Shown: piece after piece, positions 15,944 through 63,726 of the stretch
Layout of the letters: each line of letters opens with the position of its first letter
Numbering within the stretch: position 1 is the stretch's first letter
Assembly (NCBI GenBank): GCA_965235115.1
Contig: OZ249436.1
Location: 30,194,001-30,258,000, forward strand
DNA from: Laetmonice hystrix
Lineage: Eukaryota
Direction: 5' to 3'
DNA: 64,000 bases
Position numbers and translations under genes: made by a program
Notes under the pieces: model-generated
What the model was told of the DNA's origin: nothing
Seen by the model: the letters and a program-made list of their open reading frames with translations, nothing else
Database searches by the model: none

Positions 15944-17619
15944 TGTGTCTATGCCTGCCGTCAGGGTCTTTCAGTGTCTTAAGATCCATGTTGTAACCGC
16001 TGTCAGATTATGCCATCTCCTTAAGGCATGCTCTGTGCCCCCCCCCCCGCCCCCCTTTTATTTTCCATCTGGCCGGTACTAAGTCTGCTCCTTGTCGATC
16101 TGGCATCCCTGGACGGGCCGTATTGCCAGGACGGGGTAGCACCTACAGTTTTCGTTTGACCTCACCATGCTGTCTGGCTACAAATTGCATGCCAAACAGG
16201 CCCGGGCAACAAGGGGCTGGGGACGGGGCTGGCATTGCCTCTTGGCTGAAGGTCTGACCCATTACCAAGGCCGCCTGCCACATTCCGTGTTTAGTATGTC
16301 CCAAAATATATACAGTCAATAAAATTTATACGTATGGGGAAGCGTGTGCTGAGATAGGTTAGTAGTTATGAACCTTACAGCAAGAAGTATTCATGTGGCC
16401 AGATGCTTTGCATGCAGGTATTTCCCTCTGGACACACGGTGACTATCAGAGCGGTCTTTAAGAACCGAGTGAAGGTGGTTAGCAATATGTATCATAGCAA
16501 CAAGCAGTAGGCCGGGTTATCTCGACAATGAGAGCAAGTGTTGGGGTACTGTAGGGTTATAGGACGTACATTCTGTATACCTGTGAACATTGAAAAGTGA
16601 CCACCGACATGGTGTCACTGGTAGCCTTAATAGGTGATATATCAACAGGCTATACCGGAAACCTTCTCTTCCCTTGGGGTTGTCTGATCGTGTCGTGCCT
16701 AGGAACTATAGCCCCCGCCATTCCACCATTAGCTTACCCTACAAAGCTCGCACACACTGCGCTGTCACTGAAACAAAATATTTGCTTCTTGATACCCGGT
16801 AGTAGAACACCCCCCCCCCCCCCTTAAACTCCCACCCCCAGAAAGCTCACGTATCCTACGCCTAGGTTGAGGTAACTCTTTGGCTGACCAGGTAAACTCG
16901 AGACATCCCACCTCAGGTGAAGGAGGAGGGCTGTTTGGGGGGCGCATTCCAGAGTCTGCGGGTTTACGTCACGGGCCAAAGGCGGCTTGCGTGTCTCCAA
17001 GTCGCCGACACATAACCACTATACATTCATGACCTTCTTTCCTGAAAACAAGAGGCGTCTTCAAAATAGCCTGGGTATATATTTGGCCATTGATGAACCG
17101 TGGTCATTTGAGGCCTTGTCCACCTGGAAGCATCTTAGCCCACATTATAGCTCCAAGCCTTAGCGTCGCCGCTGCTTAAATGCTGCAGAATAATAATTAA
17201 ACTGCAGTATATACCGGCAAACTTACACGGCCAACAGCAATGGAATGTCGAAGTACACTGGCTGCTTTTGGGGCAACAGGAGTTGTGCCTTACTGATGTC
17301 GACCGAGGATTTACTAGATGCGACCTATTTCAGTTTATGTTGACTTACCCTCGTGCTACTGTGGAAAGACATGAAGGAGACAGATGAGGAGGACATCAAG
17401 ACAGTGCTGACATATTGCTTTTATCGTTTTTAAGACTTGCCGTATTGCTGGACAATATTGTGCACACCTGATTCTACCCGTATCCCCGGAGGATTCTGGA
17501 TACGATCCACACGCTGCGGACGTCTATACAATAATCTCATTGCCTTAGCAGAGACTAAAGGACTCCGATATTATTTATCCAAAGGACTCAGATAGTATTA
17601 TTATTATTATTTACAGGAG

Positions 17620-17683
17620 ATGAAGATTTTCGTGGGAATCGTTTTACTAGCGGCGCTCACTGCTGGGCCGGTCCTTGGTCAAG
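17620..17683 (+). CDS. Coding exon 1: signal peptide MKIFVGIVLLAALTAGPVLGQ
   Basis: TTACAG acceptor, then GAG ATG. Basic residue, hydrophobic core and small-residue cleavage region. Phase-1 donor GTAAGG at 17684. Confidence 0.85.
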
Positions 17684-20600
17684 GTAAGGTCTTTTTGTTT
17701 CAAGCCTGGTCATTATAACCTTCGTGTTCTCGCCAGAGTATGTTAAGACACCGAATATTAGTTAAGTCCTAGATTTAAGCATCAAACTAGTCGTAAGAGA
17801 ATGGCTTTTAGCATTAAGTGTTTCATTATGTTGTGTTGTGTTTCTTACAGGTCACGGAAAAGATTCAATTGTTTCCTCTTTTCTTAGGGGATCTCTGCTA
17901 ATATTGTTCTAACATGTTAATATTATTTTGATTTTATATCTCTGCATTGAATGTGAATCTTAGATGTATTACATTAATGACTCTGAATACACCCGTTTAA
18001 CCTTGACGTCCAACATATATACCTACATAATATATAGTGACATCTAGTTTCTAAATAACGGATTAGTACCGTAATTCTCCTTCCCCATTCGCCGTGTTTA
18101 CCCATTCAATTTAAATATACAACGTCTCGACATGATTAACATGAATCAAGAAATACATAAAGGGTCTAAAGTAATCGTTCTGTACCTGCTCCCTGCAAGC
18201 CATTTCCGTATGACACTTCTCAAAGCGCTCCCACAAAGCAACACGAGGACTTTGAGCCAGTTTCTTCGGTTTTTAATCTTTTTTTGTTATTTCCCCGAGC
18301 CCCTTTCATGCCAAGGCATTGTGAGAGAATCCAAATACTGTTGTTGACAGCCCACGTTGCCCTTTATATCCGATGCTGGTCACATAGGCAGTTCCCGTGT
18401 CTCCGACACAGCCAGAACCACCTACACACTGTCATATTTCGACTTAAATACCCTTTCGGAATACATGTTCTTTTTTTCAACAAACCTGCACTCGTTCAAA
18501 TAGGCCCACCGGAATAAGTAGGCGAACGACCATGAAGGCAAAACGTAGACAGACAACAACAAAAAACGGCGGCTACAGAATATAGACACGGGACGGGGTG
18601 GGGGGTGGGGGGTATACATTGTCTGGGGGAAGAATCAGATCCCGCCAAGTTTAATATCACTTTAGTTACCTGGCGGGCATGGCCAACCAACCTCTTCCGT
18701 ACCGTGGGCATGTTGTAGCTCTTAAACAAGTAGAACGATCGCGAAAGACGGTGGGAAACGCGCCCTGATTAACATGGTTGCCCAAATAACCAGGTCAAGT
18801 GCAGGAGTTCAAATGTGTGCAAGCCAGTGCACGTCAAGATGCCATGCTATATGTATGTTGATGTTCAGGGAAGAAACTACCGTACACCTTTACTATTACC
18901 CGCATATTTGGTTGGGCCAGACGTCTCGCCCTTACCTGAACTTCTTCTTATCCCCCCAAAATCGCCACTTTTGAATGTGTGAAAATAACGCTCTCAATTA
19001 GTCAGGTATGGAAGACGTCTATTGTTTCCGTTTTAATTATCATGCGATATGTATTTTTTTTAATAACAAAAGACGATTCTGTGAAATATGCAACAAACGA
19101 TCGCCCTGCGACTACCAGGTTACGTGCATGCCTTTTGTCGGGCATACTAAAACCTTCGTGATATGTATCGAGTTGCTATGTAAAACCTTGCATGCACGCA
19201 ATCATGCGTTACTCGAAATGACGGTGACGACTTTGACAATATGTAGTAGACCTATGCATACTATGTACGAATGCATTCAAACAGACCGTGCATTGTTCAT
19301 GGGTAGTACCTATAAGTAACATAATAATGTATTGAGATTGTTTTCTAGTGACATGTGTATTATGAGTCCACATTTCATTCAAAAACAAAGTGATTACATA
19401 AAACAAACCAGAGAAGGCGAAAACGCTAATTAATCCCACAAAGGAGCCAAAAGGAGCAGTATATATAATAAGCAAACCTTTTGTTATGAGATTTGTAAGA
19501 AAACACATACCCTAACACATTACCACATAACACGTTCCGACACTTATAATCACGTAACAGTACACGGCAGTCGCTTCACGCATGGCTAAACTTGGGCGGC
19601 GTGCAAGCGGTACCTGTACCATGCATGCATGCTGACAATTATAAAGATCCGATTTCTTTAAAATATAAAACTTCATAAGCAGACCAATGCCAAAATGGTG
19701 CGATTCAGTTCACCATTTTGTAGGACTGGTTTTCGATTGAATTGATGACACCTGAACAGTTTAAATTGCTGTTCACACTCTCGGTCGTATTTTTGTAAGG
19801 GATCTTTGCCTTCGAATACGATATTGACGGTAGTATGAGACGGACTATTATAAACATGCTGACAGTGTAATTTCTGTAGACAGTGTATAATGCAAAATGT
19901 ACGACAAACGTGTTTTGGTGCTAATTAGCGTTATAAAGATACGTTGGGACAATATAACGCTCAGTAAACAATGGTATTGGATACTATTATAGGCACATTA
20001 TTACTATTACAACCTCTATTGTAGACCTTCACGAATGAATATGGACAGTTACCTACTTATTTGATCTAATTAAGGAATAAACGAGTCATTTTCTTTGAAC
20101 CATTTTAAATGAGTGCATGCAGGCCGGTGGTCATAGCCCTGGTAAGAATACGTTATATGAAAATAGTTAGAGAGCGATGAAAATTTTTTTTAGGGGAGAG
20201 TCTTTCTGGCCAAGTTAAGCGCCAATAGTTAATATATAGCGACAGCTGACAGCTTTCAATATTATTGCTTGTCTTACCGAAAAATTAAAATAGGTATCGG
20301 AGCCTACTTCTAAAATCAGATATACCTTGTGCAATATCTGCAATGTTAAATGTCACTTTAAACGTAATGTAATGGAAACTGGAAATATTTGTCTAATATC
20401 CTACCCCTGTATTCTATTCCTTGTTGAATAAGTATAATTTTGTTGGGAGTTTCCAATTAAAAAAAGAAAGGGAAAAATTGTCAAAAGCTTATTGTCAACA
20501 AATGTGATTATTCTCCATGTGTATGTTATGTAGGGCAGGCGTGCACCATTCGTATTACCAGTATGTATTAATTCACATGTTTCTGTGTCAGAATGAGTGC

Positions 20601-21029
20601 TCATTTAAATGCAAACCAGGCCGTTGGAATGTTTCTTTTCAAAACTATAAGAAGATGCAGAAAAAAAGGATACCGAGGGAAGTGAAGATGATAATTAAGT
20701 TAGGTGTGTGGCATGCTTGTGGCTGAATGGTATTTTCCGTGGAATATCACACCATTCCCATTACAAAAGGCTCCGTATATATAAATGTACATAGTAAACA
20801 CTAATTAGGCGATGACGTAAAGGGGTCACGACATTGTGAAGGATGTCACTGTCAGTCTATGAGTGTAGACCGTCCTGAACCCAGAGAGCACGCGCTGTAT
20901 GTAAATACACGTGTTAGAGGACACGCAATAAAAATGTAGTGAATCAAAACTATAAGGTCATGCACATAATATGCACATACATATATTATACACACATAGA
21001 CAGGTTAGAACTGAAGTGCAGACAGGAGT

Positions 21030-25600: not shown

Positions 25601-25829
25601 AGCAAATTTACTTTTGGTGTGGCCTATGTGCCTTGGCATTTTTGTCGACTCTTTTTTTACCATTATTTATTGGTGGTTGGATGAATGTACTGAAGACAGA
25701 AATAGGGCAACGTGTCTGTGAAACAAATTCTATGGTTACAGTGGTACGTCTGATATTTCTATTGGTTTGATTTATTTATCAGTTTTATTTATTTGTCAGA
25801 GTCAAGCAAAATATGTCTGTTTGGTTTAG

Positions 25830-26474
25830 GTTCGGTTCGTGCAAGCGTCAGACCTATGGTCCAGTCTATGGTGGACCTGACTCTGTGCTTCCACACCAGC
25901 TCGGACCTCCGAAATGGCGAGAGGGAGGCTATGGTCAATCAAGCAAAGTCACTTCTCGACTTCATTTTGATTGGCCCGGACCAAACCCGCGTTTCGTTGG
26001 TGTTCTATGACGGCCTACGAGCGCGGGTTGTCCGAAGGTTCCAACAGAATGGGGGTGTCATTGCCAACACGGAGAACCTCAAGTCAGAAATCGATGGGGT
26101 CCTCACTGAGGTGGGTCAATCCGGGGCCGCCGTCTCTGAAGTCTTGCGGCTTCTCGTCGACGATATTTATACGGCTGATTCCGGAGATAGAGAAAATGTA
26201 GGGAATCTAGTCCTACTGATGGTAGGCGGAGGAGGGAACCTTGTCCTGTCCTCGCTTCAAAACATTCAGTTCCAAGTGAGCCGACTGCGACGTGAAGAGA
26301 TCGGAATTCTTGTGATGGCCCTCAACAGCCAGTTCTCGACGGAGGTGCAGTCCCGTCTGGAGGTAGCATCGTGGCGTTCCTCCAGTCTTCTCCAACCTCG
26401 CAACACCAACACGTTCATCACTGACCAACTGCGCACCATACTCCTGCTCGGACAGGCCATTGTGTCCAGCTTTG
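25830..26474 (+). CDS. vWA domain 1 exon (alternative in-phase acceptor at 25800)
   Basis: ORF 25793..26509 has vWA-type motifs VDLTLCF, TRVSLVFY and SGDRENVGNLVLLM. Acceptor TTTAG, donor GTGAGA, phase 1-1. Confidence 0.88.
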
Positions 26475-27846: not shown

Positions 27847-28506
27847 ACGAAGTCCCAGTAAGGTCACGGTCCAACATTGTTCTCATCGTTCAAACATCAT
27901 CGAACCTCCGGGAACAGAGGTCAATTATTGAGACGTTCCTTTTCAACTTCATCAATTACTTCGACTTCACGAGCGGAGAAATTAATTTTGCCGTCTTGAC
28001 CTACAATGGACAGCCTTTAACTAATCCTAATTACAAATTTACATTCGCCGTTGACCAGAATCGAGAGAACATCTTAGGGTTGACTGGCGATGTTCTTGAG
28101 GCCAGTTTCAATGCTGGCGGAAGTGGAAATGACATTGCGGAAGCCCTAGACTATGCAAGGGTGAACCTCTTCCAGTCAAGATTTAGAGACTCCAATTATG
28201 TCGTGGCTGTAATGGGAAGCGTGAATCCAGAAGAACAAGTAAGAATTCAAACTGCAGCACAGCAAATGAGAAACCGAAGAGTTCTGGTGATTGGCCTGCG
28301 CTATCCAACGTCGCAAATCCAACCACAGCAACTGCAATGGATTACGTACGGACCAGAGCAGTCTCTTTACAATGTGGACCTGTCTTTTGGAGACACATTC
28401 GGAGTTCTACAAAACGTACAGAGGTCTGCCTCCATATTCCAACCTACAGGTGCTGTAGATCCACCTCCTCCTGTCGTAGTCCCGGGACCAGCCCTACCAC
28501 CCCCAG
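27847..28506 (+). CDS. vWA domain 2 exon with Pro-rich C-terminal linker
   Basis: Reads SNIVLIVQTSSN...INFAVLTY...DIAEALDYAR...PPPPVVVPGPALPPP. Acceptor after a polypyrimidine tract, donor GTTAGT, phase 1-1. Confidence 0.88.
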
Positions 28507-29408: not shown

Positions 29409-29996
29409 ATGGCTTGGACGTGGCAGACGTTACGTTTGTCCTTCACGGAGCGGTGGATGTTTCCCCCGAGTATTTCCGAGCTCAGAAAGATCTGGCGAAC
29501 TTGTTACTCGATGCGTTCCCAGCGTACGGGGCAGATGGCGTGCGCGTCGCCGTCGTCCTTTATGGCGGCAATGCCGTTATTTGGTACTTCCTGAGCAGTT
29601 ACCGCACGTATCCAAACAAAACAGACATTAAGGATGCGATTGATAGACTGCCTCGCAACGCTGAACGGGGGGCAAACTTTAGAGAGGTATTTCGATTGCT
29701 CAAGGACCGGATCTATTCCCAAGCCTATGATTACTATGGCCCGCGCAAAGGGTCCCCTAAAATAGTGTTTTGGATGGTCGCTTACAAACAACCTAATACT
29801 GCCATAATCACTGATGCCGCATCTGCAAGAGAACGTGGGATGAAAATTTATGGCATCACGTTCTCCCAAAATGTGTCGGCCGAGTTCTTGCAAGACCTGT
29901 CATGGAACACCACATACCAGCTCCGGGTGGCCGATTTACGGACCCTTGCAGGCAACTCAAGGGCCATCTTCAGACAGTTAGGAGTCAGTGATCAGG
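29409..29996 (+). CDS. vWA domain 3 exon
   Basis: Reads ADVTFVLHG...VRVAVVLYG...GPRKGSPKIVF. Acceptor TAAAG, donor GTAGGT, phase 1-1. Confidence 0.9.
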
Positions 29997-30834: not shown

Positions 30835-31398
30835 ATGTCGGCACAGGAAGCCGGGTGGACGTTGCGATCATCTTGCAAAACTCGCGAGATCTCGGAGACG
30901 CAGTGTACGGCACACTGCGAAATAAAGTAATCGCACTTATTCAGACCTACAGGGTTGATCGCAATAATGCTCGGATTTCGTTAGTAACGTTTGATCGAAT
31001 GGCTGAAGTGCAGTTTTCCTTGGAACGATATGGAAACATAGCAGACGTCATCACGGCAGTCACTCGAACCCCAATAGGAGAGACAGGAACGAACCTGGCA
31101 GCAGGCCTTAGAATAGTTCGATCACAGGTTTTTCTAGGGTCCGGGGACCGGCCTCGGATTGCTTACGTGTTTATGGGAAGTCGTTCGACTATAGAAGGTA
31201 TTCAAGAAATAACGCAAGCTGCCTTGAGCCTTCGGGACAGTCGGATAGGTGTGGTGACGGTTGGAATCCGAGGTCTACCAGATTTGTCCGAACAACTACT
31301 TGCCGCAGCTTGGTCGGCGCAATACGCCGAGACGTACGCAAGTGCTGGCAGCATTGACATCAGGAACGTGAAACGGTCGGGAAGTCTATTAGCAGTGG
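30835..31398 (+). CDS. vWA domain 4 exon
   Basis: Reads VDVAIILQNS...ARISLVTFD...GTNLAAGL...SGDRP. Donor GTGAGT, phase 1-1. Confidence 0.92.
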
Positions 31399-31977: not shown

Positions 31978-32523
31978 CACTCACCCGGCAAGATGTCACC
32001 TTTGTGGTGCCAGGAAACAGGAGAGTCGATTCCACTGCGGTCAAAGACTACATAAAAACCCTTGTACGCCTATATCTAGTAGGGCGTAACGCGGCTAGGA
32101 TAGCTGTAGTGGTTTTCGACAGACAGGCCCGGATTCAGTTTGATTTTGACGATTATTCCACCGAAAGAGATGTCTTAAATGCCATCGATAACATACGGTT
32201 TGACGGAGATGGGTTCAACCTTACGGATGCAATGTATACTATGAGAACGCAGCTTTATAGACCCAACAGAGGAGACAGACCAGGTGTACCAAACATAGCG
32301 TACTTGTTGGTGTCCCAGCGCCCCACGGACCAAGGCCTTGATGACCAGGCCGCACTCCTAAGGACAAGAAGGATTGGGGCTATTGTATTGGGCTATGGAC
32401 GCGACGTCTTCCGGACCGATATAGAGAGACTTGCATGGAATAGAAACTTTGTCCGGCGCACAAACCGGCTGGACGAGCTCCCCAGGAGTACCCTCACCAG
32501 CCTTTCATTTACCCTTTTGAGGG
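31978..32523 (+). CDS. vWA domain 5 exon
   Basis: Reads QDVTFVV...ARIAVVVFD...RGDRPGVPNIAYLL. Acceptor CACAG, donor GTGAGT, phase 1-1. Confidence 0.92.
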
Positions 32524-33522: not shown

Positions 33523-34101
33523 ATATCCAAGACGTCACCACTGGTTTAGTATTTGTGGTCAATATCAACACGGATATGCGGCAGGACGATATCAGACAAC
33601 TCAAGACCCTAATCATCGACCTCATCCGACGAGACTTCGAATCAGGAACCACCTCGAAGAGAGTTGTGATGATCGTATTCGATTCACAAGCTCGCGTGGA
33701 GTTCCAGTATGACATCGAGACCTCCCAAGATTTGGGCCGAATTAACCAACTCGTAAATAACATCGCAGCACGAGGCAGAGGCACAAGAATCGCAGAGGGT
33801 CTGCGATTGGCCAGAGACACAATAGACACATTAATCCGAGACGGGGTCATAGACACCAGCAACATCTATCTACTGGTTGGCCGTCCGGACGACGACTCCC
33901 CAGGGACGATTCAGTTACAGAGTACTATACTCAGGGAACGAACCATCAGCGTCTTCCCCATCGGTTTCACCAACCTCGCTCGCCAAACTGACCTCGAGGC
34001 CGCAGCCACGTTTCCAAGTTATGTAGTTACTGCCTCGAGTCCAAGTTCATTAAACGTTACAAGGATAGTGTTTCTGTCGCGAACATTGGTGCTGATGGTT
34101 G
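33523..34101 (+). CDS. vWA domain 6 exon
   Basis: Reads GLVFVVN...RVVMIVFDSQARVEF...GTRIAEGL. Acceptor TGTAG, donor GTGAGT, phase 1-1. Confidence 0.9.
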
Positions 34102-35505: not shown

Positions 35506-35538
35506 ATACTAGTGACCAAAGAGTCATCGTGATACCAG
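35506..35538 (+). CDS. 33-nt microexon (DTSDQRVIVIPG linker)
   Basis: TTTTTAACAG acceptor and GTAAAT donor. Open and frame-preserving, phase 1-1. Confidence 0.6.
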
Positions 35539-35797
35539 GTAAATTATATTGTGGTCAATAAAAATAGATTATGTAACAGGTTTATGAATAATTAAATGAC
35601 GAATGTTTCCTCTATCTGAAAGGTCTCCAGCACAAAATATCTTAAGTAGTCTTTCCCGTTCTCCAATTTTCGTTGTCTTAGGACGAAAACAACTCCAAAT
35701 TCTTGCATAGATCAAACAGACATTCTCAGTTCGCAAATTTGACTTTATAATCCAAGCCTCACACAGCTTCAATGTTTGCCTCATCTGTTTTTTCCAG

Positions 35798-41830: not shown

Positions 41831-41917
41831 CACCACCATCCGTTGGCGCGACTGGAGCTACTGGTGCTATTGGCCCTGTCGGACCCGTAGGTCCCATCGG
41901 ACCTGTTGGCCCTATAG
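41831..41917 (+). CDS. First collagenous exon ([25 protein letters not shown])
   Basis: GACAG acceptor, GTAAAA donor, Gly-X-Y register. Confidence 0.88.
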
Positions 41918-42058
41918 GTAAAAACCTACTCTGTCACTTGTTACTGAGCAATATACCAATAATATTTCTCCTGGTCGTAAGTATTGAACGAATAAGTTAA
42001 TATAAAGAGATGACAATGATGATGATTGGAATATAAACGAAGATATTTTGTATAATAG

Positions 42059-45092: not shown

Positions 45093-46001
45093 GTGCAACT
45101 GGTTCAGTTGGTTCAACTGGCCGCTCTGGTCCGGAGGGTCCTCGTGGTTCGCCAGGTGATGACGGAAGTACCGGTCCCATGGGTCCAACTGGTGGTACCG
45201 GGGCGGCTGGTCCAACCGGACCTACGGGATCCACTGGAACCACTGGCCCAACTGGACCTACTGGAGGAACTGGAGTAACTGGTCCAACTGGACGGACTGG
45301 TGCTACCGGAAGTCGTGGTCGGCCAGGCTTCACCGGCGACAGAGGCCCTCAGGGATTTACAGGGGCATCAGGGCGTGATGGAAGGCCAGGCTTCACTGGT
45401 GCAACAGGACCACAGGGACGAACAGGAGAAACGGGCTCTACGGGCCGACCTGGTTTCGATGGAGCTACAGGACCAAGGGGCCAACAGGGTTTCACGGGAG
45501 GCATAGGACCGCGTGGGCCACAAGGATTTACGGGAAGTACCGGACCCAGCGGTGGCACTGGGTCGCCAGGAAGGACAGGTCCTGAAGGGCGACCTGGTAC
45601 CCCAGGCGGTGATGGACAAACTGGAGGTACTGGTGCCAGAGGCCCAACAGGTCCAACCGGCTCCACAGGTACTACGGGACCAACTGGGCCAACTGGAGGT
45701 ACGGGATCAACTGGCCCCACGGGTCGAACAGGAGCCACTGGAAGTATAGGTCGGCAAGGGTTTACGGGAACTACTGGACCAACTGGTCGTACTGGTGCTA
45801 CTGGTCGAGATGGTCGTCCCGGACAGACTGGGTCTACCGGTCGTCAGGGACCACAAGGCTTTACTGGTGCTACTGGACCAAGTGGTCCGCGAGGTTTTAC
45901 TGGTGGAACCGGCAGGGAAGGTGCTACTGGAGAGACTGGTCCACAAGGTCCTAGAGGATTCTCTGGTGGTACTGGAGATAGAGGACCAACTGGTTTCACC
46001 G
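45093..46001 (+). CDS. Collagen exon, 101 triplets
   Basis: ORF 45083..46045. TTCAG acceptor, GTAAGT donor. Confidence 0.95.
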
Positions 46002-46618: not shown

Positions 46619-47059
46619 GTTCCACGGGGCCGACTGGTTCCACTGGTCCTCGGGGCGGCGACGGACGTCCCGGTTCAGATGGAAGGCCTGGTTCCACTGG
46701 CCCATCTGGTCCAACTGGAGCAACTGGCAGAAGAGGACCCACCGGCCCGACTGGGTCTACTGGAACAACTGGACCTACAGGTCCAACCGGAGGCACTGGA
46801 TCAACTGGTCCAACAGGCAGAACAGGTGCAACAGGACCTCGAGGTCGCTTTGGATTCACTGGCGCCACCGGCCGACCCGGAGGCGATGGCCGACCTGGTG
46901 ACAGAGGGCCTGTCGGTAATACAGGAGCTACAGGACAGCGAGGATTTGATGGTTTCACTGGCCCCACCGGTCCAACAGGAGCAACCGGGAGACGTGGACC
47001 GGAGGGACCGGAGGGAAGAGACGGGGCTACTGGAATACGTGGACCCAGTGGATTTACTG
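46619..47059 (+). CDS. Collagen exon, 49 triplets
   Basis: ORF 46597..47157. TATAG acceptor, GTAAGC donor. Confidence 0.93.
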
Positions 47060-47182: not shown

Positions 47183-47614
47183 GATCAACCGGACGTCCAG
47201 GGCCAATAGGTGCAACTGGTCAATTCGGTTCAGATGGTCGCCCAGGAACTCCAGGATCAACAGGACCGTTAGGACCCACTGGAGGCACTGGAGCTACTGG
47301 ACCAACTGGACCTACTGGAATAACAGGTTCTACTGGGCCTACTGGGCCTACTGGAGGAACTGGTTCCACAGGGCCCACGGGAAGGACAGGAGCAACAGGT
47401 GTCCGTGGACCGCAAGGATTTACTGGATCATCTGGTCCAAGAGGCTTTGTAGGAGAAACTGGATCTACTGGCCCGGTCGGTCGTACTGGAGCAACTGGTA
47501 GAGATGGAAGAGATGGAGCAACTGGATTAACTGGACCTAGAGGATTTACAGGATCAACTGGCCCGACTGGATTTACTGGTTCAACTGGACCCCAAGGACG
47601 CGACGGCCGCCCAG
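47183..47614 (+). CDS. Collagen exon, 48 triplets
   Basis: Read manually as Gly-X-Y. TTAAG acceptor, GTATGT donor. Confidence 0.92.
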
Positions 47615-47779: not shown

Positions 47780-48220
<441 letters not shown>

Positions 48221-48444: not shown

Positions 48445-49029
48445 GTTCGACTGGTCCGGTTGGAAGTACTGGCTCGACTGGTCGACAAGGTCGGGATGGG
48501 TCTACTGGAGCCATAGGCCCAACTGGTCCCTTTGGTTTTACTGGATCAACTGGACCGTCTGGTCCAACAGGAGCAACTGGGCGTAGGGGTCCAACCGGCC
48601 CTACGGGCTCTACTGGTACAACTGGACCGACCGGCCCAACAGGAGGAACGGGTTCAACTGGTCCAACTGGACGGACCGGAGCGACAGGTTCGAGAGGACC
48701 CCAAGGATTCACGGGAAACACCGGACCTGAGGGACGTACTGGTGCATCAGGCCGGGACGGACGCCCTGGAACCACTGGTGCAACCGGTCCTATCGGTTCA
48801 ACAGGCCGTGACGGTCGGCCCGGATTCACTGGTGCCACTGGGCCCTCGGGTCGAACAGGCGCCACTGGTCTGAGAGGCCGTGAAGGATTCACAGGGTCGA
48901 CGGGTCCGACAGGGAACACTGGCGCGACGGGTCGGGACGGTCGTCCAGGCCGGGACGGTGCGACTGGATTAACGGGTCCAGGCGGCAGGCCTGGAGCCAC
49001 AGGTCTCTCCGGTCCAGATGGAAGACCTG
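48445..49029 (+). CDS. Collagen exon, 65 triplets
   Basis: ORF 48435..49061. CACAG acceptor, GTGAGT donor. Confidence 0.93.
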
Positions 49030-49245: not shown

Positions 49246-49794
49246 GGAGGCCAGGGTTTACTGGAGCGACTGGTCCAGGTGGTCGGGAAGGCCGTGACGG
49301 AGCAACTGGATCCACTGGACCCAGCGGCCCAACTGGTGCAACTGGTTCCCGTGGCCCAACCGGCCCAACAGGTTCAACTGGAACAACCGGTCCTACAGGT
49401 CCAACTGGAGGAACTGGTTCTACAGGACCCACTGGACGAACTGGAGCAACAGGAATGAGAGGTCCTGAAGGTCAGACAGGTGCAACTGGCCGGGACGGCC
49501 GACCTGGATTTACGGGTTCGACTGGGCCCACCGGCAGGACTGGAGCTACTGGCAGACAAGGACGTGACGGATTTACTGGAGCCACTGGTCCACAGGGCCC
49601 GCGGGGAGAGACGGGTGGAACTGGCCGCGAAGGCTTCACCGGAGCCACAGGACCGACGGGTAGAAGTGGTGCCACTGGTCGGCAAGGTCCTCAAGGATTT
49701 ACCGGCAGGCCTGGACGTGACGGTAACACTGGATCTACAGGTCGTGTCGGACGGACCGGCGGCACTGGAGCAACTGGTCCAACTGGATTTACAG
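49246..49794 (+). CDS. Collagen exon, 61 triplets
   Basis: TACAG acceptor. Weak GTACCA donor placed where Gly-X-Y ends. Confidence 0.88.
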
Positions 49795-50358: not shown

Positions 50359-50526
50359 NNNNNNNNNNNNNNNNNNNNNNNNNNNNNNNNNNNNNNNNNN
50401 NNNNNNNNNNNNNNNNNNNNNNNNNNNNNNNNNNNNNNNNNNNNNNNNNNNNNNNNNNNNNNNNNNNNNNNNNNNNNNNNNNNNNNNNNNNNNNNNNNNN
50501 NNNNNNNNNNNNNNNNNNNNNNNNNN
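50359..50526. other. Assembly gap (168 N) inside an intron
   Basis: Run of N. Confidence 1.
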
Positions 50527-50666: not shown

Positions 50667-50882
50667 GATCTACTGGCCCAATGGGAGCGACTGGAAGGGA
50701 GGGCCCTTCTGGTCCACAGGGACGAGATGGATCCACTGGATCCACTGGACCAGGTGGCCCAACTGGTGCAACTGGTTCCCGTGGCCCAACCGGCCCCACT
50801 GGTTCAACTGGAACAACCGGTCCTACAGGTCCAACTGGAGGAACTGGTTCTACAGGACCCACTGGACGAACTGGAGCAACAG
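50667..50882 (+). CDS. Collagen exon, 24 triplets
   Basis: TTAAG acceptor, GTGAGA donor. Confidence 0.9.
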
Positions 50883-51047
50883 GTGAGAAAACAATGAAGA
50901 GAAATTAAAAATGTAAGTCTAAGAAATCGTTAGAGTCCTTAAGAAACTTTCAAGGTTTGAACAATTTGAAACAGTTACATCTTTTATATTTAAAATACAT
51001 GAGGATTATTTGATTTCAATATACATTACGTAATGTTTTCGTCTCAG

Positions 51048-51452
51048 GTTCACGGGGACCCCAAGGATTCACTGGAACAACTGGGCCGACTGGTCGTACT
51101 GGTGCTACTGGATTCCCTGGTCGTGACGGTGCCACTGGTCTCCGTGGACCGCAGGGACCGCGAGGTTTCACTGGAGGGACCGGCGGGAGAGGTGACACTG
51201 GTACTACTGGACCGACAGGTCGCACTGGAGGCACAGGAGCCAGAGGTCCCACCGGCTTCACCGGCTCAAGAGGTCCTGAGGGACGGGTGGGCGCTACGGG
51301 TCCTCAAGGACCTCGTGGTTTTACTGGCGGCCCCGGACGAGACGGGAGAACAGGAGCGACTGGACGGCAAGGATTTTCTGGTGCGACTGGTCCGCAGGGA
51401 CCACGTGGTGAGACTGGAAGTACAGGACCCGGAGGACGACCGGGCGGCCCAG
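51048..51452 (+). CDS. Collagen exon, 45 triplets
   Basis: CTCAG acceptor, GTATGC donor. Confidence 0.92.
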
Positions 51453-51683: not shown

Positions 51684-51845
51684 GCCGTGATGGTGACACT
51701 GGCGCTACTGGACCCAGCGGACCACAGGGAAGGGAAGGCTTCACTGGTCCCAGAGGACCTGAGGGTTTCACTGGTGCAACTGGTCCAAGTGGTCCCACTG
51801 GAGCAACAGGTCGTGCCGGACCTACTGGGCCAACCGGCTCCACAG
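51684..51845 (+). CDS. Collagen exon, 18 triplets
   Basis: TCCAG acceptor, GTTAGT donor. Confidence 0.9.
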
Positions 51846-51998: not shown

Positions 51999-52484
51999 GT
52001 ACAACTGGTCCGACTGGCCCCACTGGTGGCACTGGATCAACTGGCCCCACTGGAAGAACAGGAGCCACTGGTAGAAGAGGACCTCAAGGTTTGACGGGAG
52101 CCACAGGACCGACAGGCCGGACAGGAGGGACAGGTCCTCAGGGACGTACCGGATTTACAGGATCCACAGGACGACCTGGATTTACTGGAGCTACCGGTCG
52201 TGACGGGCGCAGTGGGGCAACTGGTTCCACTGGTCCGACTGGATTTACAGGTTCTACAGGCCCTCAAGGTCCGCGAGGTTTCCAGGGAGGAACTGGACGT
52301 GAGGGTCCAAGAGGCCAGACTGGCAGCACAGGTTCTACAGGTCCAGGTGGACCCATTGGTGCCACCGGGTCTACTGGTCCAGGCGGTCAGCCAGGAAGGG
52401 TTGGAGGTACAGGTGCCACTGGTGTACCTGGACCCACTGGACCAAGGGGATTTGATGGCGGAACAGGCCGTGACGGCTTTACAG
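51999..52484 (+). CDS. Collagen exon, 54 triplets
   Basis: TTTAG acceptor, GTACTT donor. Confidence 0.9.
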
Positions 52485-52593: not shown

Positions 52594-52935
52594 GTGCAAC
52601 TGGTCCTTCTGGACCAACTGGTGCCACTGGCGGTAGAGGGCCTACCGGTCCCACTGGCTCAACCGGGACAACCGGTCCAACTGGCCCTACTGGAGGTACT
52701 GGATCAACTGGACCCACCGGCCGAACTGGTGCTACTGGCAGGCAGGGACCGCAAGGAGTTACTGGAGCGACGGGCAGAGACGGCCGCGATGGAAGGACCG
52801 GCGGAACTGGTTCCACGGGACCGAGCGGGCGGACTGGTTCAACTGGACCGCAGGGACCAAGCGGCTTCACCGGATCTACTGGTCCTACCGGTCGCACTGG
52901 TGCTACGGGCTTCCAAGGTCGACCCGGGTTTACAG
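52594..52935 (+). CDS. Collagen exon, 38 triplets
   Basis: TTAAG acceptor. Weak GTGCTG donor placed where Gly-X-Y ends. Confidence 0.85.
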
Positions 52936-53186: not shown

Positions 53187-53375
53187 GCGCACCTGGTCGG
53201 GACGGCCGCCCTGGAGAGACTGGATCAACGGGTCCTACCGGACGTACAGGAGGCACTGGTAGAGAAGGTCCGCGTGGGTTCAGTGGTGCACCCGGCCGTG
53301 ATGGACGTCCTGGAGACCCTGGACGAGAAGGTCGGCCCGGATTCACGGGGGCCACTGGACCAACAGGATTCACAG
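53187..53375 (+). CDS. Collagen exon, 21 triplets
   Basis: ORF 53177..53434. AAAAG acceptor, GTGGGT donor. Confidence 0.87.
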
Positions 53376-53668: not shown

Positions 53669-54514
53669 GATCAACGGGTCCCATTGGAGCTACGGGATCC
53701 ACTGGTCGTGGAGGACCGACAGGAGCAACTGGAAGCACTGGCCCTGGCGGACGCACTGGAAGTACTGGTTTAACTGGTCCAACAGGACCCACTGGATCAA
53801 CTGGATCAACTGGTCGCCAAGGACGGACTGGCGCCACTGGATCTACCGGTCGAGAGGGCGCCACTGGACTGACGGGTCGTCCTGGACCTTTTGGTGCAAC
53901 TGGATTACCAGGCCGGGCAGGTCCGGAAGGAAGGGACGGTTCAACGGGTGCAATCGGGCCATCCGGTCCAACCGGAGCGACTGGGCGTTCGGGACCGACT
54001 GGGCCCACAGGAGCAACAGGAGGAATTGGGCGTCAAGGCAGGACCGGTGGAACAGGATCAACTGGTCCTACAGGAAGAACTGGTTCCACTGGGTTGACGG
54101 GTCGACCAGGTACTTCAGGCGCGAGAGGTGCTACTGGAATCCGTGGACCTGAAGGTTTTACTGGATCTACAGGTCCGACAGGTCGCACTGGAGCAACTGG
54201 TCTGAGAGGTCCAGGTGGCTTCACAGGTGCAACAGGTCGGCCAGGGTTCAGAGGTGATACAGGATCAACGGGTCCGTCAGGTCGAACTGGAGCCACAGGA
54301 AGACTGGGCCCGTCGGGTTTCACTGGATCGACTGGGCCGACTGGTCGAACTGGTGCCACCGGCCCGCGAGGTTTTGATGGCAGGGATGGGCGCACAGGAG
54401 GCACTGGGGCGACTGGTCCCGGCGGCCGAACCGGGGCAACAGGACCGACTGGACCGCAAGGCTTCACAGGGTCCACTGGACGGGATGGGCGGCCTGGACG
54501 TGATGGAGCCACAG
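53669..54514 (+). CDS. Collagen exon, 94 triplets
   Basis: TTTAG acceptor, GTTCGT donor. Confidence 0.9.
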
Positions 54515-54881: not shown

Positions 54882-55673
54882 GATTAACTGGGCCCCGTGG
54901 TGGACCTGGATTCGCTGGAGCCACCGGCCCCAGCGGCCCAACTGGTGGTACTGGTGCTACTGGTCCCTCAGGGCGCACAGGTTCTACAGGCTTAACTGGT
55001 CCGTCCGGCCCAACAGGAGGTACTGGATCAACTGGTCCCTCAGGGCGCACAGGAGCTACTGGAAGCATCGGCGCCTCTGGTTTCCCTGGACGGGATGGAG
55101 ATACAGGCTCAACTGGTCGACAGGGCCCTCGAGGCTTCACTGGAGCCACTGGTCCCCTTGGTAGAACGGGTGCAACTGGCCGCCCAGGTGCAACGGGAAG
55201 AGATGGACGAGATGGTCGCACCGGCGGCACTGGCGCTACTGGCCCGACTGGGTTCACTGGAAGAACTGGGCCAACTGGAAGAACTGGAGGCACTGGAGCC
55301 ACAGGCCGAGACGGCCGCACGGGCGCAACCGGCTCAACGGGAGAACGTGGTTTCACGGGATCCATTGGGCCCTTGGGTCCACAAGGATTTACTGGTTCAA
55401 CTGGTCCCGCAGGCCGCACCGGCGGCACGGGAAGCACTGGTTTCCCGGGCCGAGACGGTCGTCCTGGAGATACTGGAGCAACTGGCCGACCAGGCTTCGA
55501 TGGAGCCACTGGCCGGGAAGGGCGCGATGGCAACACGGGCGCTACTGGAAGGCCAGGTCTGGATGGCAGGCCTGGGTCCACTGGGCCCACGGGACGAACG
55601 GGGGCCACTGGACGCGACGGCCGCGATGGGTCCACAGGAGCTACGGGACGATCCGGGCAGACTGGTGGAACTG
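54882..55673 (+). CDS. Collagen exon, 88 triplets
   Basis: ORF 54863..55684. TTCAG acceptor, GTATGT donor. Confidence 0.93.
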
Positions 55674-55985: not shown

Positions 55986-58154
55986 GTGCGACTGGTCCAT
56001 CTGGCCAAACTGGAGCCACTGGTCGTATAGGACCAGGAGGGCCGACAGGCGCGACTGGTGCCATAGGTCGTGACGGAAGAACAGGAGGTACCGGGTCCAC
56101 TGGCCCGACTGGTAGGACTGGAGCCACTGGTGGTTTTGGAGCTACAGGAAGGCCTGGCATTGACGGCCGACCTGGCCGAGATGGAGACATTGGTTCCACG
56201 GGTCCAACGGGACAGACAGGTGGAACTGGATTCCCTGGACGGCGAGGACCTACTGGAAGTACAGGAACCACTGGTCCAACGGGACGCACTGGAGCTACGG
56301 GACGTGACGGAAGACCGGGTATCACTGGGGTACCAGGACGCGATGGCCGCCCTGGGTTCTCGGGAGCTACAGGTTTCCCAGGCCGTGACGGTAGGCCTGG
56401 AAACGATGGCGATCGGGGCCGACCTGGCGATACGGGCTCAACTGGCAGAATTGGGCCTGAAGGACGCACGGGAGCAACAGGACCCCAGGGACCTCTAGGC
56501 TTCACTGGAACCACAGGCCCAACTGGTCCGACTGGTGCTACGGGTAGATCTGGACCCACCGGTCCAACAGGTGCGACGGGCTCGACTGGACGACAAGGTC
56601 AGACTGGCGGGACTGGAGCAACAGGTCCTGGTGGTCGCACTGGTGGCACTGGAGCTACTGGTGAAACTGGTCGGCAAGGAAGGGACGGGTTCACAGGAGC
56701 AACAGGACCGTCAGGTCGCACTGGTGCAACAGGTATCCAAGGTCCGCGAGGATTCTCGGGTGCCCCTGGACGAGATGGACGCACGGGTGGTACTGGTAGA
56801 CCTGGATTCCAAGGCCGAGATGGATTCACTGGAGCTACTGGCCCGCAAGGAAGAACTGGTGCCACAGGTGAAACTGGCCGACCAGGTCGAACTGGAACCA
56901 TAGGTGCGACCGGTTTTATCGGACCTCAAGGCCCCAGCGGCTTTACTGGATCGACTGGCCCCACGGGAAGAACAGGTGCTACTGGTAGAGATGGTCGCCC
57001 AGGACCTACTGGAAGGACTGGTGCTACTGGACGTGACGGACGACCCGGAAGAACTGGGGGCCTCGGAGCAACTGGTTTCACAGGCCGAACTGGTGCCACT
57101 GGATTAGAGGGAGCCACTGGGCGGGAAGGAAGACCAGGACGACCTGGAGATCCAGGATTCACTGGGACTACTGGACCTACTGGCCGCACGGGTGCTACGG
57201 GTTCCCCTGGTCGTGATGGTCGCCCAGGACCTCAAGGATTCGCAGGAGCCACAGGTCCTCAAGGGCGCACTGGAGGCACTGGTGCGACTGGGCGAGATGG
57301 AAGGGATGGACAGACTGGTGCAACCGGACCCTCTGGTCCAACTGGTGCCACAGGCAGAATTGGACCAAGTGGACGAACTGGAGGTACTGGGTTCACTGGA
57401 CCGACTGGACGGACCGGTGCTACTGGTTCGACAGGAAGACCTGGTCAGACTGGAGCCACGGGTGGCCCAGGAAGAGATGGTCGCACAGGAGGTACTGGTG
57501 CAACAGGTGAAACCGGTCGACCTGGTAGCGATGGACGTGATGGTGCTACCGGCCTAACAGGACGTACAGGTGCAACTGGTGGTTTTGGAGCTACAGGTCG
57601 CGACGGTCGCAGTGGAGCAACTGGTTTCCCAGGACGGGATGGTCGTGATGGATTTACTGGATCTACTGGTCCCACAGGACGCACTGGAGCGACGGGTGCT
57701 CCAGGCCGTGACGGAGCTACTGGAGGCAGGGGCTTTGATGGCAGAACAGGTGGAACTGGTGCAATTGGACCAACGGGACCCACAGGTGCTACTGGCCCTC
57801 GTGGTATCGGAGGTAGAACAGGAGGAACTGGTGCTACTGGTCCTGGTGGAAGGACTGGAGCTACAGGTTCAACTGGTAGGACTGGAGACCAAGGATTCAC
57901 TGGGTCAACTGGCCCAACTGGACGCACTGGTGGCACTGGGTCTACTGGGCGACCTGGACGTGATGGATTCACTGGCTCCACCGGTCCTGAAGGTCGCTCT
58001 GGTGCTCCTGGCCGACAAGGTTTCACAGGTTTTCCTGGTCGTGACGGTTTTACAGGAGCCACGGGACCTTCAGGCAGAACAGGGGCAACTGGTTCAACCG
58101 GTCGGGAAGGTCCACAGGGACGACCAGGTTCAACTGGTCTTACTGGATTTACAG
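55986..58154 (+). CDS. Collagen exon, 241 triplets (largest, 2169 nt)
   Basis: AACAG acceptor, GTATAA donor. Gly-X-Y frame spot-checked. It is absent from the ORF track, probably because it lacks an in-frame start codon. Confidence 0.9.
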
Positions 58155-58474: not shown

Positions 58475-59721
<1,247 letters not shown>

Positions 59722-59869: not shown

Positions 59870-61534
59870 GTGCATCTGGACGTGATGGAAGAACTGGTGC
59901 AACTGGACGTGATGGAAGATCTGGTGCCCAGGGTCAAACAGGTTCAACTGGTCCAGTTGGTCCAGAGGGTAGGTCAGGCGCCATTGGACGCACCGGTTTC
60001 ACTGGTCCAACTGGCCGTACGGGAGCCACCGGTTCTACTGGACCCACTGGTCGCACGGGTGCAACAGGAAGAAGAGGAAACTCTGGAGCTACTGGAAGCA
60101 CTGGTTTCCCTGGACGAGACGGCCGCCCTGGATTCACGGGCGGCACCGGTTCCACTGGTAGAACAGGTGCTATTGGTTCAACTGGTTCCACTGGACCGAC
60201 TGGGCGGACAGGTGCTACTGGATCTACGGGACCTGTTGGTCGCACAGGCCGAACAGGTGCAACTGGTTTCACTGGTCGCTCAGGTGCAACTGGATCAACT
60301 GGTCCTACAGGCCGAACAGGAGCCACGGGCTCAACTGGAAGAGACGGACGTGATGGTGCAACTGGTAGTACCGGAATGACTGGAGCGTCAGGTTTCGCGG
60401 GACGAACTGGGGGCACTGGAGCCACTGGTCCAACTGGAAGGACTGGAGCAACGGGATCGTCAGGACCAACGGGTAGAACCGGAGCGACTGGGTCCACCGG
60501 TCCTGGAGGTAGAACTGGATCAACTGGAGCCACTGGAGCTCCTGGATTCCAAGGTCGAACTGGATCCACAGGTGCAACTGGAAGAGATGGCAGAGATGGT
60601 AATACCGGTTCGACTGGTCCAGAGGGAAGAACCGGGGCAACTGGTCCATCTGGTAGGACCGGAGCGACTGGTCGTGACGGCAGGATTGGCGCCACTGGTT
60701 TCTCAGGACGGGATGGCCGGGATGGCTTCACTGGTTCAACTGGTCCAACTGGAAGGACTGGTGCCACGGGAGGCACTGGAGCAACAGGTTTCCCAGGAAG
60801 GCAGGGTCTCACTGGAGCGACTGGATCAACTGGTAGAGATGGTAGAGATGGATTCACGGGTTCAACTGGTCCTACGGGTAGAACTGGAGCTACTGGATCT
60901 ACCGGTCCCATTGGTCTGCCTGGACGAGATGGTCGCACTGGAGGTATTGGTGCTACGGGTTTCACTGGTAGAGACGGATTTACAGGATCTACTGGACCCA
61001 CTGGACGAACTGGTGCAACTGGTAGCAGTGGAGCCACTGGAGTTCCCGGAAGAGATGGTCGCACAGGTGGCATCGGAGCAACAGGTTTCTCAGGAAGGGA
61101 TGGATTCACTGGATCGACGGGTCCCACTGGAAGAACAGGGGCCACTGGAGCAACAGGTGTGGCTGGTCCTAGAGGTTTTGATGGATTCACCGGAGCAACA
61201 GGCAGGGATGGCCGCACAGGAAACCCCGGTGTCACGGGCTCCACTGGACCTACTGGTAGAACAGGAGCAACTGGGTCGACAGGAGCAACAGGTATTAGGG
61301 GTCGGGATGGTGTCACTGGAGCAACTGGGCCGACAGGGCGAACCGGTGCAACAGGAGTAACGGGACCGACAGGTCGAACTGGAGCAACCGGTTCTTCAGG
61401 ACCTACGGGCAGAACGGGAGCGACTGGTTCTACAGGTCTGAGTGGTCGAACTGGAGCAACTGGCCAAACTGGACCCCGTGGAAGAGATGGCCGGACGGGA
61501 GCACTTGGACCCTCTGGAATGACAGGATCTACAG
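59870..61534 (+). CDS. Collagen exon, 185 triplets
   Basis: TATAG acceptor, GTGAGT donor. ORF 60376..61605 covers the 3' part. Confidence 0.93.
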
Positions 61535-61743: not shown

Positions 61744-62724
61744 GTCCGACTGGAAGGACGGGAGCCACTGGCTCCACGGGTGGCTCTGGTCGCGATGGCA
61801 GAAGTGGCGCCACAGGATCTACTGGATTCCCTGGTCGCGAAGGATTTACAGGCGCTACTGGACCAACTGGGCGAACTGGTGCAACTGGTAGCACTGGAAG
61901 ACAAGGTTTACCAGGTCGACAAGGATTTACTGGATCGTCTGGTGCCACTGGTCGCGAGGGTCCAACAGGCCGAACCGGCGCCACTGGATTCACAGGTAGG
62001 CCTGGAATACAGGGACGCGACGGTTTCACAGGCGCTACCGGTTTTCCAGGTCGGGACGGCCAAACGGGAGGAAGGGGAGCCACCGGTTTCTCAGGTGCCA
62101 CAGGTGCGACCGGACCAACGGGTCGCACAGGCGCCACTGGACTCCGTGGAAGCACCGGTTTCACTGGAGAGCGCGGAAGAACAGGTGCCACCGGAGCCAC
62201 TGGTGATCGTGGTTTCGATGGATTTACTGGTGCTACTGGACCCACCGGGAGAACAGGCGCTACTGGTTCAACGGGTGTGCGTGGACCTTCTGGGTTCACC
62301 GGTAGCACCGGTAGAACTGGTGCAACTGGTTCTACAGGTCGGGATGGATTCACGGGTGCAACTGGTCCGTCCGGGCGCACAGGAGGCTCCGGAGCTACTG
62401 GCTTCCCCGGACGGGATGGTTCAACTGGTGCTACAGGAAGAGACGGGGCTACCGGACCGACAGGCAGGACTGGTGCAACTGGAACAACTGGGCCAACTGG
62501 CCGCACGGGCGCGACGGGATCGTCGGGTCCCACTGGCCGCACGGGCGCCACCGGGTCAACTGGTCCGTTCGGTCGGACGGGAGCCACTGGTTTTACTGGA
62601 CCGAGGGGAGAGCGTGGTTTTGATGGTGGTAAGGGTGACACTGGATCACGGGGTTTCACTGGTCGTACTGGTGCCACCGGCCCCGCCGGACCCCCAGGTC
62701 CTGTCATCGCAGGCGATATTGGAG
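61744..62724 (+). CDS. Last collagen exon, helix ends [15 protein letters not shown]
   Basis: ORF 61734..62813. TCCAG acceptor, GTAAGA donor. Confidence 0.93.
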
Positions 62725-62920
62725 GTAAGACCACAGGATGGAAACGTTTTGTCTTATTATTGAACAATACACAATATAACTTCACCTACATTTCTGGACA
62801 ATCTGACCAGTAACATTCAAACATAACGATAATTTGAATTAATAAAACGGTTACTTCAGTGAGGTTTTTCCTACTTCTCCAGGATGCTTCGACTAATTTT
62901 GATACGTCCCTGTTTGACAG

Positions 62921-63079
62921 AATATGAAGCCAACCTATGTCGGGACAAGCAGTGTGACAGCGAGTGTCAGACAGCAGTTACTGTGTCCGGATTTAACCGA
63001 ACGATCGTCATCGCCTTCTGTATGTGTGACGTGCCAGGTCTGGGCAAGATCCGGCTACCTGACGGACAGAGGTGTTCAG
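62921..63079 (+). CDS. EGF-like domain 1 exon (atypical spacing)
   Basis: Six Cys: CRDKQCDSEC...FCMC...QRC. GACAG acceptor, GTGAGT donor, phase 1-1. Confidence 0.85.
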
Positions 63080-63534
63080 GTGAGTCACCATCAATCAACA
63101 GATGTCGGTCTCTCTATCTCCTCAAGGTGATTCCGTACGGTACAACGTACTGGTAAAGGTCGTAGGAACCAGTGAGGAGTCTTTACGGGAAAACCAGCTG
63201 GCATGAATAGAGATAGGGTTCCCCATCACTGGGTATCTCAGATAGGGCCTACTATAGTATAGAGGCTATAAGTGATATAAATAAATAAATGGTAATGGCG
63301 GTAATTGCTTTCTTTAGGTTTTCTCAGTATATCAGTCTCTAATATTATGCTATATTATAACGGTACATGAACCGTATATGATACCCCTAGACCTAAACAG
63401 ACCTAAACAGGTCTCAATAATTTTGTACAGTGTAAATTTACCAAAACAAAACTCATGGGGACATGAGGAGTATAGTTGAATACCTACGTATATTGCCAAG
63501 CTGAATTCATGAATATTTCTTTCGTCGCCCTTAG

Positions 63535-63726
63535 ATGTGAGGATCTGCGAATACAACTACGGAGACTGCGAGCAAATCTGTACTCCAGTCCAAGGTTTCA
63601 ACCAGAACCACTGTAGCTGCTACCCTGGCTTCGTACTCTCTGACAACAAACGGAGCTGCCTGCCCGTCGGTGTCGGGCCAACCTTCCAACCCAGGCCCGG
63701 CGGTGCCGACTTCCTCTTCGGACATA
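63535..63726 (+). CDS. EGF-like domain 2 exon; gene continues past window
   Basis: Reads CEYNYGDCEQICT...CSCYPGFVLSDNKRSC. CTTAG acceptor, GTGAGT phase-1 donor with no stop codon. Confidence 0.9.

Follow-up and report, generated by a model that had tools for sequence, protein, structure and literature searches.

The question raised by a 64,000-nucleotide stretch of contig OZ249436.1 of Laetmonice hystrix (positions 30,194,001 to 30,258,000; hereafter the window) is whether a giant collagen gene found there encodes a cuticle collagen of the annelid type. The threonine-glycosylated cuticle collagen of the tubeworm Riftia pachyptila has stood since 1996 as a textbook exception to the stabilisation of collagen helices by hydroxyproline, and to our knowledge it has never been assigned a gene. 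This protein is said to form a helix of ~1.5 μm with a terminal globule, and the cuticle collagen of Alvinella or other polychaetes is reportedly 2.4-2.5 μm long; we did not find either length in the open literature searched. Vertebrate fibrillar helices have ~1,014 residues (~300 nm), with a rise of ~0.29 nm per residue. An initial annotation, made from the letters of the window, had proposed the gene as a candidate for a micrometre-long cuticle collagen. We find that the gene is real and its architecture new, and we regard as evenly balanced the proposition that it encodes an annelid Gly-X-Thr giant collagen that is made as a membrane-anchored precursor and acts in the cuticle.

To define the gene, the window was scanned for collagen repeats and the exons were chained by splice site and phase. 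Coordinates are those of the window unless they carry the prefix G000, and the gene lies on the + strand. Uninterrupted Gly-X-Y runs of at least five triplets comprise 5,205 amino acids in 26 runs on this strand, between 41,845 and 62,705. Since the minus strand of the whole window holds only 33 amino acids in such runs, chance or a minus-strand artefact is ruled out as the source of the signal. The AG at the start of each collagen exon supplies, with its G, the first base of a glycine codon, and the exon closes at G/GT, so all 21 are phase 1-1 cassettes with lengths that are multiples of 9 nt. Throughout the chain, consensus splice sites join phase-compatible, stop-free exons. Within the window, one signal peptide exon, six von Willebrand factor A (vWA) exons, two exons of a jelly-roll domain, 21 collagen exons and two EGF exons add up to 20,101 nt, or 6,700 codons with no stop, and end at a phase-1 donor still open at 63,726. 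This independently rebuilt chain agrees with the one first proposed, which consisted of a signal peptide, six vWA domains, an unknown domain, collagen and two EGF domains, also open at the window end. When 3.1 kb of downstream sequence was added, the model was completed at 37 coding exons, spanning 49.5 kb and encoding 6,993 residues (670 kDa before modification). None of the exons from the jelly-roll to the transmembrane segment has a start codon or signal peptide of its own, and they must therefore belong to one transcript.

The collagen rod dominates the product. It extends from residue 1410 to residue 6588 and contains 5,179 Gly-X-Y residues, close to the ~5,190 originally counted; the final 4,872 are continuous, and five small imperfections all fall within the first 307 residues. 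At 0.286 nm per residue, the predicted rod is 1.48 μm long, which bears out the earlier estimate of ~1.5 μm. The first collagen exon (41831-41917) begins with TPPSV and then enters Gly-X-Y; it was recognized from the Gly-X-Y scan, its splice sites and its place in the chain. The next, collagen exon 1 of the numbered series (42059-43096), carries the five imperfections and was placed by splice sites, chain and helix scan. Evidence of the same kind as for the first collagen exon defines exon 2 (43305-44933, 543 codons), exon 3 (45093-46001), exon 4 (46619-47059), exon 5 (47183-47614), exon 6 (47781-48185), exon 7 (48445-49029) and exon 8 (49246-49794), the last ahead of an assembly gap. Beyond the gap, it likewise defines exon 10 (51048-51452), exon 11 (51684-51845), exon 12 (51999-52484), exon 13 (52594-52935), exon 14 (53187-53375), exon 15 (53669-54514), exon 16 (54882-55673), exon 17 (55986-58154), which at 723 codons is the largest, exon 18 (58480-59721) and exon 19 (59870-61534). 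Exon 20 (61744-62724), placed by splice sites and chain, contains the end of the helix, where GPPGPV is followed by IAGDIG. Exon 9 (50667-50882) duplicates part of exon 8 at 93% identity, and was identified from splice sites, chain and self-comparison.

The gap, a run of N at 50359-50526, is located in the intron between exons 8 and 9, 564 nt past the donor at 49,794 and 140 nt ahead of the acceptor at 50,667. Because the exons on either side are both phase 1-1, the frame is continuous whatever the gap contains. The segments flanking it are a duplicated pair, 50720-50888 being a 93% copy of 49290-49460, and a gap placed inside a local duplication means that further cassette exons could be hidden there, leaving helix length uncertain by whole triplets. 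This raises the possibility that misassembly has inflated or deflated the helix and that the match to 1.5 μm is accidental, a concern also voiced for giant collagens by the authors of the Alvinella genome (PMC12403961). We consider this highly improbable, since the other collagen exons are only 63-78% identical to one another, in DNA or in protein, and are too diverged for long reads to collapse or expand them. Three DNA runs contain 81-91% of the words sampled from the locus, although they come from the same sample and are not independent support. As an observation on its own, the duplicated pair points to local duplication in the recent past or to gene conversion, every other exon pair being below 79% identity.

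The composition of the rod is of an unusual kind. Over its 1,735 triplets, the Y position is Thr in 57.0%, Pro in 9.6% and Asp in 8%, and the X position is Arg in 23%, Pro in 22%, Ala in 17%, Ser in 11% and Phe in 8.5%. The whole helix has 1,022 Thr, 502 Arg and a single Lys, and neither Cys nor N-glycosylation sequons occur anywhere in residues 1410-6588. The near absence of Lys implies that there are no lysyl-oxidase cross-links. The cuticle collagen of Riftia is described as also having Thr in the Y position, where it is galactosylated (Mann 1996, via PMC11766948 and PMC10141479), and annelid cuticle collagens as combining very long helices with globular domains (Gaill 1995, via PMC11766948). 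Folding of Ac-(Gly-Pro-Thr)10 requires galactosylation, and triplets with Thr are described as uncommon among eukaryotic collagens (PMC11923368); one review deems the Thr-glycosylation trait of Riftia species-specific (PMC11766948). The gene examined here and the Riftia protein have in common an annelid host, a giant helix, Thr rather than hydroxyproline in the Y position and a globular end. They differ in that the Riftia protein is known from biochemistry and partial peptides, comes from a siboglinid, and has never been reported to have an EGF and transmembrane end.

Literature searches returned no gene or domain structure for the Riftia cuticle collagen, tubeworm genome and proteome papers make no mention of such a collagen, and the siboglinid gene sets in the 2025 Alvinella genome study are without giant collagen models (PMC12403961). 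Nor did these searches turn up a published gene with the architecture found here. The nearest are the giant collagens of alvinellids and Eisenia andrei, which have 7,719-8,859 amino acids and are discussed as cuticle-related (PMC12403961, Table 1). Like the present gene they are annelid and several-fold longer than vertebrate chains, but they are Pro-rich (G-X-P 22-33%), longer, and listed without an architecture, whereas the gene here is of the Thr type, with a vWA head and an EGF/transmembrane base. The host itself is not a tubeworm. Its mitochondrial ND3 is closest to those of Aphroditiformia (scale worms), Nephtys and Glycera, all Phyllodocida, with 65-73% identity, a figure that is understated since genetic code 11 was used for translation. 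The annelid origin assumed at the outset is thus upheld, with ND3 closest to Phyllodocida/Aphroditiformia, and the host is an errant, phyllodocid-like polychaete.

The N-terminal head was examined next to the rod. Exon 1 (17620-17683) contains the start codon and signal peptide (MKIFVGIVLLAALTAGPVLGQ) and ends in the phase-1 donor CAAG/gtaagg. It is followed by six vWA exons, all phase 1-1 and all matching Pfam VWA at 37.8-84.5 bits (cut-off 23.8): vWA1 (25800-26474, 225 codons, 37.8 bits), vWA2 (27847-28506, 39.8 bits), vWA3 (29409-29996, 61.7 bits), vWA4 (30835-31398, 60.4 bits), vWA5 (31978-32523, 84.5 bits) and vWA6 (33523-34101, 49.3 bits). The first three are placed by splice sites and lie outside the region tested with RNA. 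The closest solved relative of vWA5 is collagen VI alpha-3 (E 2e-61). On reading of the sequences, the DxSxS metal site is missing from all six domains.

To evaluate splicing of the head, we used contigs of run X4, which shares its source sample with the genome reads and is not labelled as RNA; the contigs were treated as transcripts because they are confined to exons. They cross GT..AG joints at 31398>31978, 32523>33523, 34101>35506 and 35538>35798, placing RNA junctions on both sides of vWA5 and vWA6. Three of the introns in the initial annotation were confirmed in this way, and a 33-nt micro-exon it had missed was revealed at 35506-35538 (TSDQRVIVIP), defined by its two GT..AG joints in the RNA contig together with its sequence and phase. 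One contig fuses the end of the signal peptide exon to 30835, the start of vWA4, and vWA1-3 are absent from that molecule. This joint establishes that the 5' exon is real; it also means that six vWA domains are a maximum and not a demonstrated isoform. The vWA1-3 exons may be alternative cassettes. They are 20-31% identical to the other vWA copies and open over 196-225 codons each, indicating old, maintained exons.

A locus spliced in this way might yield mainly shorter products by alternative splicing or polyadenylation and not one chain of 7,000 residues. Such products could be a vWA/jelly-roll head without the rod, rods without vWA1-3, or rods that skip many cassettes. Besides the joint from signal peptide to vWA4, contig depth, which is 13-19 on vWA4-6, drops to 4-8 at the first exon of the jelly-roll. 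Run X4 is not listed for 33523-43096, the region with the first collagen exons, and its contigs cover little of those exons or of the second exon of the jelly-roll. Each collagen exon is a phase 1-1 cassette, and read-through past the donors of vWA3 and vWA6 meets a stop after 5 and 17 codons, respectively. A transcript that ended after 36084 would, however, encode half a jelly-roll, whereas homologues have both halves followed by collagen in single open reading frames (ORFs), and the second half lies in phase 157 nt from the first collagen exon. The age of vWA1-3 argues in the same direction. Moreover, contigs are no measure of expression, and low depth may break an assembly. Taken together, we judge it improbable that shorter products are the main output.

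The domain between the vWA array and the rod, left as unknown in the initial annotation, is, as judged from a fold model, a lectin-like jelly-roll. Its first half (35798-36084, phase 1-0) is placed by the RNA junction 35538>35798 and by homologues. Its second half (41457-41673, phase 0-1) is placed by splice sites, and is continuous with the first in homologues P0032, P0018, P0083 and P0105. The two are split by an internal phase-0 intron of 5.4 kb, and the domain adjoins the helix, with five residues between them. The joint from jelly-roll to collagen is argued for by matching phase, by the 157-nt intron and by homologues P0032 and P0105, in which collagen directly follows the domain in single ORFs. 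Within the splitting intron, a 42-nt minisatellite (20.8 copies, 88% match, with an alternative 127-nt period) at 40393-41264 creates long false ORFs in three frames.

No assignment of the jelly-roll to a family was obtained from Pfam, a PDB sequence search or a protein atlas, but a library of 1.8 billion proteins yielded 177 relatives (best E 3.5e-24), mostly exon-sized fragments. The complete homologues P0032 and P0105 consist of a signal peptide, the jelly-roll and collagen, and in P0093, P0083 and an Owenia Ig/FN3 protein the domain is found on membrane proteins. The copy in P0032 (P0032:45-232), which is 46% identical to the domain here, gave a fold model with pLDDT 93.6. Among solved structures, the model is closest to a cyanophage decoration protein (Z 11.4) and the Bxb1 tail tip (Z 11.3), and further matches at Z 6-9.6 include the lectin-like domain of Cwp84, esterase N-domains, CBM32, CBM6 and F-lectins. 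In predicted-structure libraries the fold occurs in sponge, brachiopod, mollusc and annelid proteins that are uncharacterised, and also in phage tail proteins, several of which bear collagen repeats.

When a 722-residue collagen exon was used in a database search, the best matches were bacterial and phage Gly-X-Thr collagen-like proteins; this similarity may be purely compositional, and no annelid orthologue was recognisable among matches swamped by these proteins. BclA/BclB and phage tail fibres resemble the present gene in joining Gly-X-Thr repeats (glycosylated in BclA) to a jelly-roll head, but their domain order is reversed, head identity is 8-13%, and jelly-rolls of this family occur widely among animals, sponges included. 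The parallel may reflect convergence or very old shared ancestry. A word search with the P0032 jelly-roll returned only P0032 itself, and one 6.8-kb contig carrying a top jelly-roll match showed no vWA upstream, which says nothing on orthologues.

At the opposite end, the gene extends 3.1 kb beyond the window through four further phase-1 exons (G000:C1:30258288-30261134), and what they encode changes the picture of the molecule. Two EGF exons lie within the window. The first (62921-63079) has six Cys and no Pfam match, and was identified from sequence and chain; the second (63535-63726) matches Pfam cEGF (28.7 bits) and FXa_inhibition (33 bits) and ends in the open phase-1 donor. Extending the window numbering, phase and downstream sequence place EGF3 at 64288-64428, EGF4 at 64491-64628 and EGF5 at 66317-66454. 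Of these downstream EGF exons, two score 39.9 and 39.6 bits against FXa_inhibition (cut-off 33.4), and one is a calcium-binding-type EGF. All EGF exons begin with an Asp codon split by the intron. The last exon (66704-67134, or G000:C1:30260704-30261134), recognized from its hydrophobic segment and stop, encodes a neck, a 23-residue hydrophobic helix (residues ~6,883-6,905), the sequence RRWRR, and an acidic, Ser-rich tail of 87 residues that ends in T-R-L. Apart from the N-terminal signal peptide, this helix is the only hydrophobic segment of the protein, which is accordingly a type I membrane protein with a C-terminal anchor. None of the C-terminal exons has a fibrillar C-propeptide (no COLFI by Pfam), and no furin-type site was found between helix and membrane. 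The initial annotation had pictured a long rod with the vWA array as its globular end; the array and a jelly-roll do stand at the N-terminus, but the other end carries a cytoplasmic tail and a transmembrane helix besides its five EGF domains, and the molecule is more than a secreted rod with one globule. The terminal T-R-L of the tail also fits a class I PDZ-binding motif.

These features set the gene apart from the named collagen types. It has an N-terminal vWA array before the helix in common with collagen VI alpha-3 and the vWA collagens VII, XII, XIV, XXII and XXVIII. Those have interrupted helices of 336 to ~1,500 residues, FN3, TSPN or Kunitz modules and no transmembrane segment, whereas the vWA domains here are without DxSxS, and Pfam detected in the gene no FN3, TSPN, Kunitz or C-terminal vWA domain, the partner modules of the vWA collagens as a group (VI, VII, XII, XIV, XX-XXII and XXVIII). 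With the transmembrane collagens XIII, XVII, XXIII and XXV it has in common a helix on an integral membrane protein that could be shed, but these are type II proteins with an N-terminal anchor and short, interrupted helices, while the present protein is type I with its anchor at the C-terminus. Membership of this group is ruled out by the opposite orientation and the cleavable N-terminal signal peptide. A fibrillar collagen is ruled out by the missing C-propeptide and a helix five times longer than ~1,014 residues. The earlier statement that the architecture resembles no named collagen type is borne out.

Relatives in the same genome were then compared. A pair of giant collagens on contig 21 has Arg, Pro, Ala or Gln in the Y positions and almost no Thr. 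The transmembrane/tail exon of our gene is 33% identical over 96 residues to the last exon of one of them (tblastn, E 7e-7), and the two anchor exons share an exon-initial ALGQ, the string IVTIAL and the motif D-x-E-x-GSN-x-G. The pair thus resembles our gene in having giant uninterrupted helices with almost no Lys and a C-terminal neck, transmembrane helix and tail encoded by a homologous anchor exon. It differs in having longer helices matched in length to each other, whereas the gene here is without a matched partner and has five EGF domains inserted ahead of the neck. Tblastn detected no vWA, jelly-roll or EGF matches within 60 kb at the contig 21 gene. As a separate observation, the D-x-E-x-GSN-x-G motif in both tails hints at a conserved intracellular partner. 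The genome search turned up no second Thr-type gene of matching length, which favours a homotrimer. A smaller paralogue (G000:C1:51745335-51760570, minus strand; L026, L015 and L027) has a jelly-roll, Thr-rich collagen, three EGF exons and a transmembrane/tail exon, with ~1,371 helix residues in 15 collagen exons of ~96-108 residues, and no vWA within 40 kb upstream.

The anchor and the paralogue raise the possibility that the protein is not a bulk cuticle fibre but a spacer or adhesion molecule permanently tethered to the membrane, and as such the giant of a family whose type I members carry a lectin-like head on a collagen stalk. With its rod of 1.5 μm it would connect the cuticle or epicuticle to the apical membrane or to microvilli, or would act in another tissue. 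The transmembrane helix, cytoplasmic tail and EGF domains are what such a tether would be expected to have, as is the missing furin-type site; the paralogue repeats the layout with a much shorter helix, and homologues P0093, P0018 and P0083 bear the jelly-roll on membrane proteins. On the other hand, the anchor exon is common to the contig 21 giant pair, which has been read as cuticle collagen, so that an anchor is no argument against a cuticle role. Shedding by proteases other than furin is possible, and a tether is compatible with a structural component. We regard a permanent tether as possible but rather doubtful.

How a cuticle collagen could be made from this gene can be outlined as follows. 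The chain, consisting in order of a signal peptide, up to six collagen-VI-like vWA domains, the jelly-roll, the rod, five EGF domains, neck, transmembrane helix and tail, may assemble as a homotrimer, with three identical chains kept in register by their C-terminal membrane anchors. The Thr residues may be O-glycosylated as in the Riftia cuticle collagen, and this glycosylation, not hydroxyproline, would stabilise the helix. Epidermal cells may present the rod to, or release it into, the collagenous cuticle, where the vWA and lectin head, 1.5 μm from the cell, would bind other cuticle components. The gene would then be of the type behind the Riftia cuticle collagen, to which it may be orthologous, here present in an ordinary polychaete beside the Pro-type pair of 8,650 residues.

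The proposal that this gene encodes a cuticle collagen thus stands in part. Helix length and Thr chemistry (1.48 μm, with 57% Thr in Y, in an annelid) speak for it, as does an anchor exon homologous to that of the contig 21 giant pair. Several points weigh against it, however. The contig 21 pair, with Pro, Arg and Ala in Y, fits the 2.5-μm polychaete cuticle collagen better, and the short paralogue points to a family of membrane-anchored proteins whose head sits on a collagen stalk. As the host lies outside the siboglinids, equating its protein with that of Riftia draws on composition and length alone, and the searches made recovered no orthologue from another species. Transcript evidence thins towards the rod, since the sole contig to cross the 5' end leaves out vWA1-3 and RNA support ends at the first jelly-roll exon. 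Finally, symmetric cassettes and a gap within a duplication mean that the expressed helix may differ in length from 5,179 residues.

The anchored cuticle collagen and the tether can also be combined, in a reading that we consider unlikely as a whole. Annelid cuticle collagens would be made as type I membrane proteins in which the C-terminal anchor registers the chains and replaces the C-propeptide. The Thr-type molecule would stay tethered as a 1.5-μm molecular ruler or tie, its sugar-coated rod spanning the cuticle while its head of vWA and lectin domains holds on to the outer layers and sets cuticle thickness. In Riftia, this gene family would have been turned into the bulk cuticle collagen.

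The locus offers a first candidate gene for the sugar-stabilised type of cuticle collagen, so far represented only by the Riftia protein. The candidate comes as a complete gene model for a giant collagen of the Gly-X-Thr kind, found in an ordinary polychaete and with a helix length that fits. Should the link to Riftia be true, the Thr type would be an old annelid paralogue and not a vent adaptation, the Riftia gene could be traced through its jelly-roll, EGF and anchor exons, and the glycosyltransferase and the folding of a ~5,000-residue rod would become testable. The C-terminal anchor also matters in itself, being opposite in orientation to that of all named membrane collagens.

Two observations concern other sequence. 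In positions 1-17600 of the window, no ORF of at least 75 amino acids has a Pfam match, and the gene appears to have at least 17 kb upstream of it without a recognisable coding neighbour. The mitochondrial contig (G000:C35, 16,826 nt; L018, 1-2045) starts with about four tandem copies of a ~512-nt unit, presumably a repeated control region, in which pseudo-ORFs of 120 and 135 amino acids recur every 512 nt.

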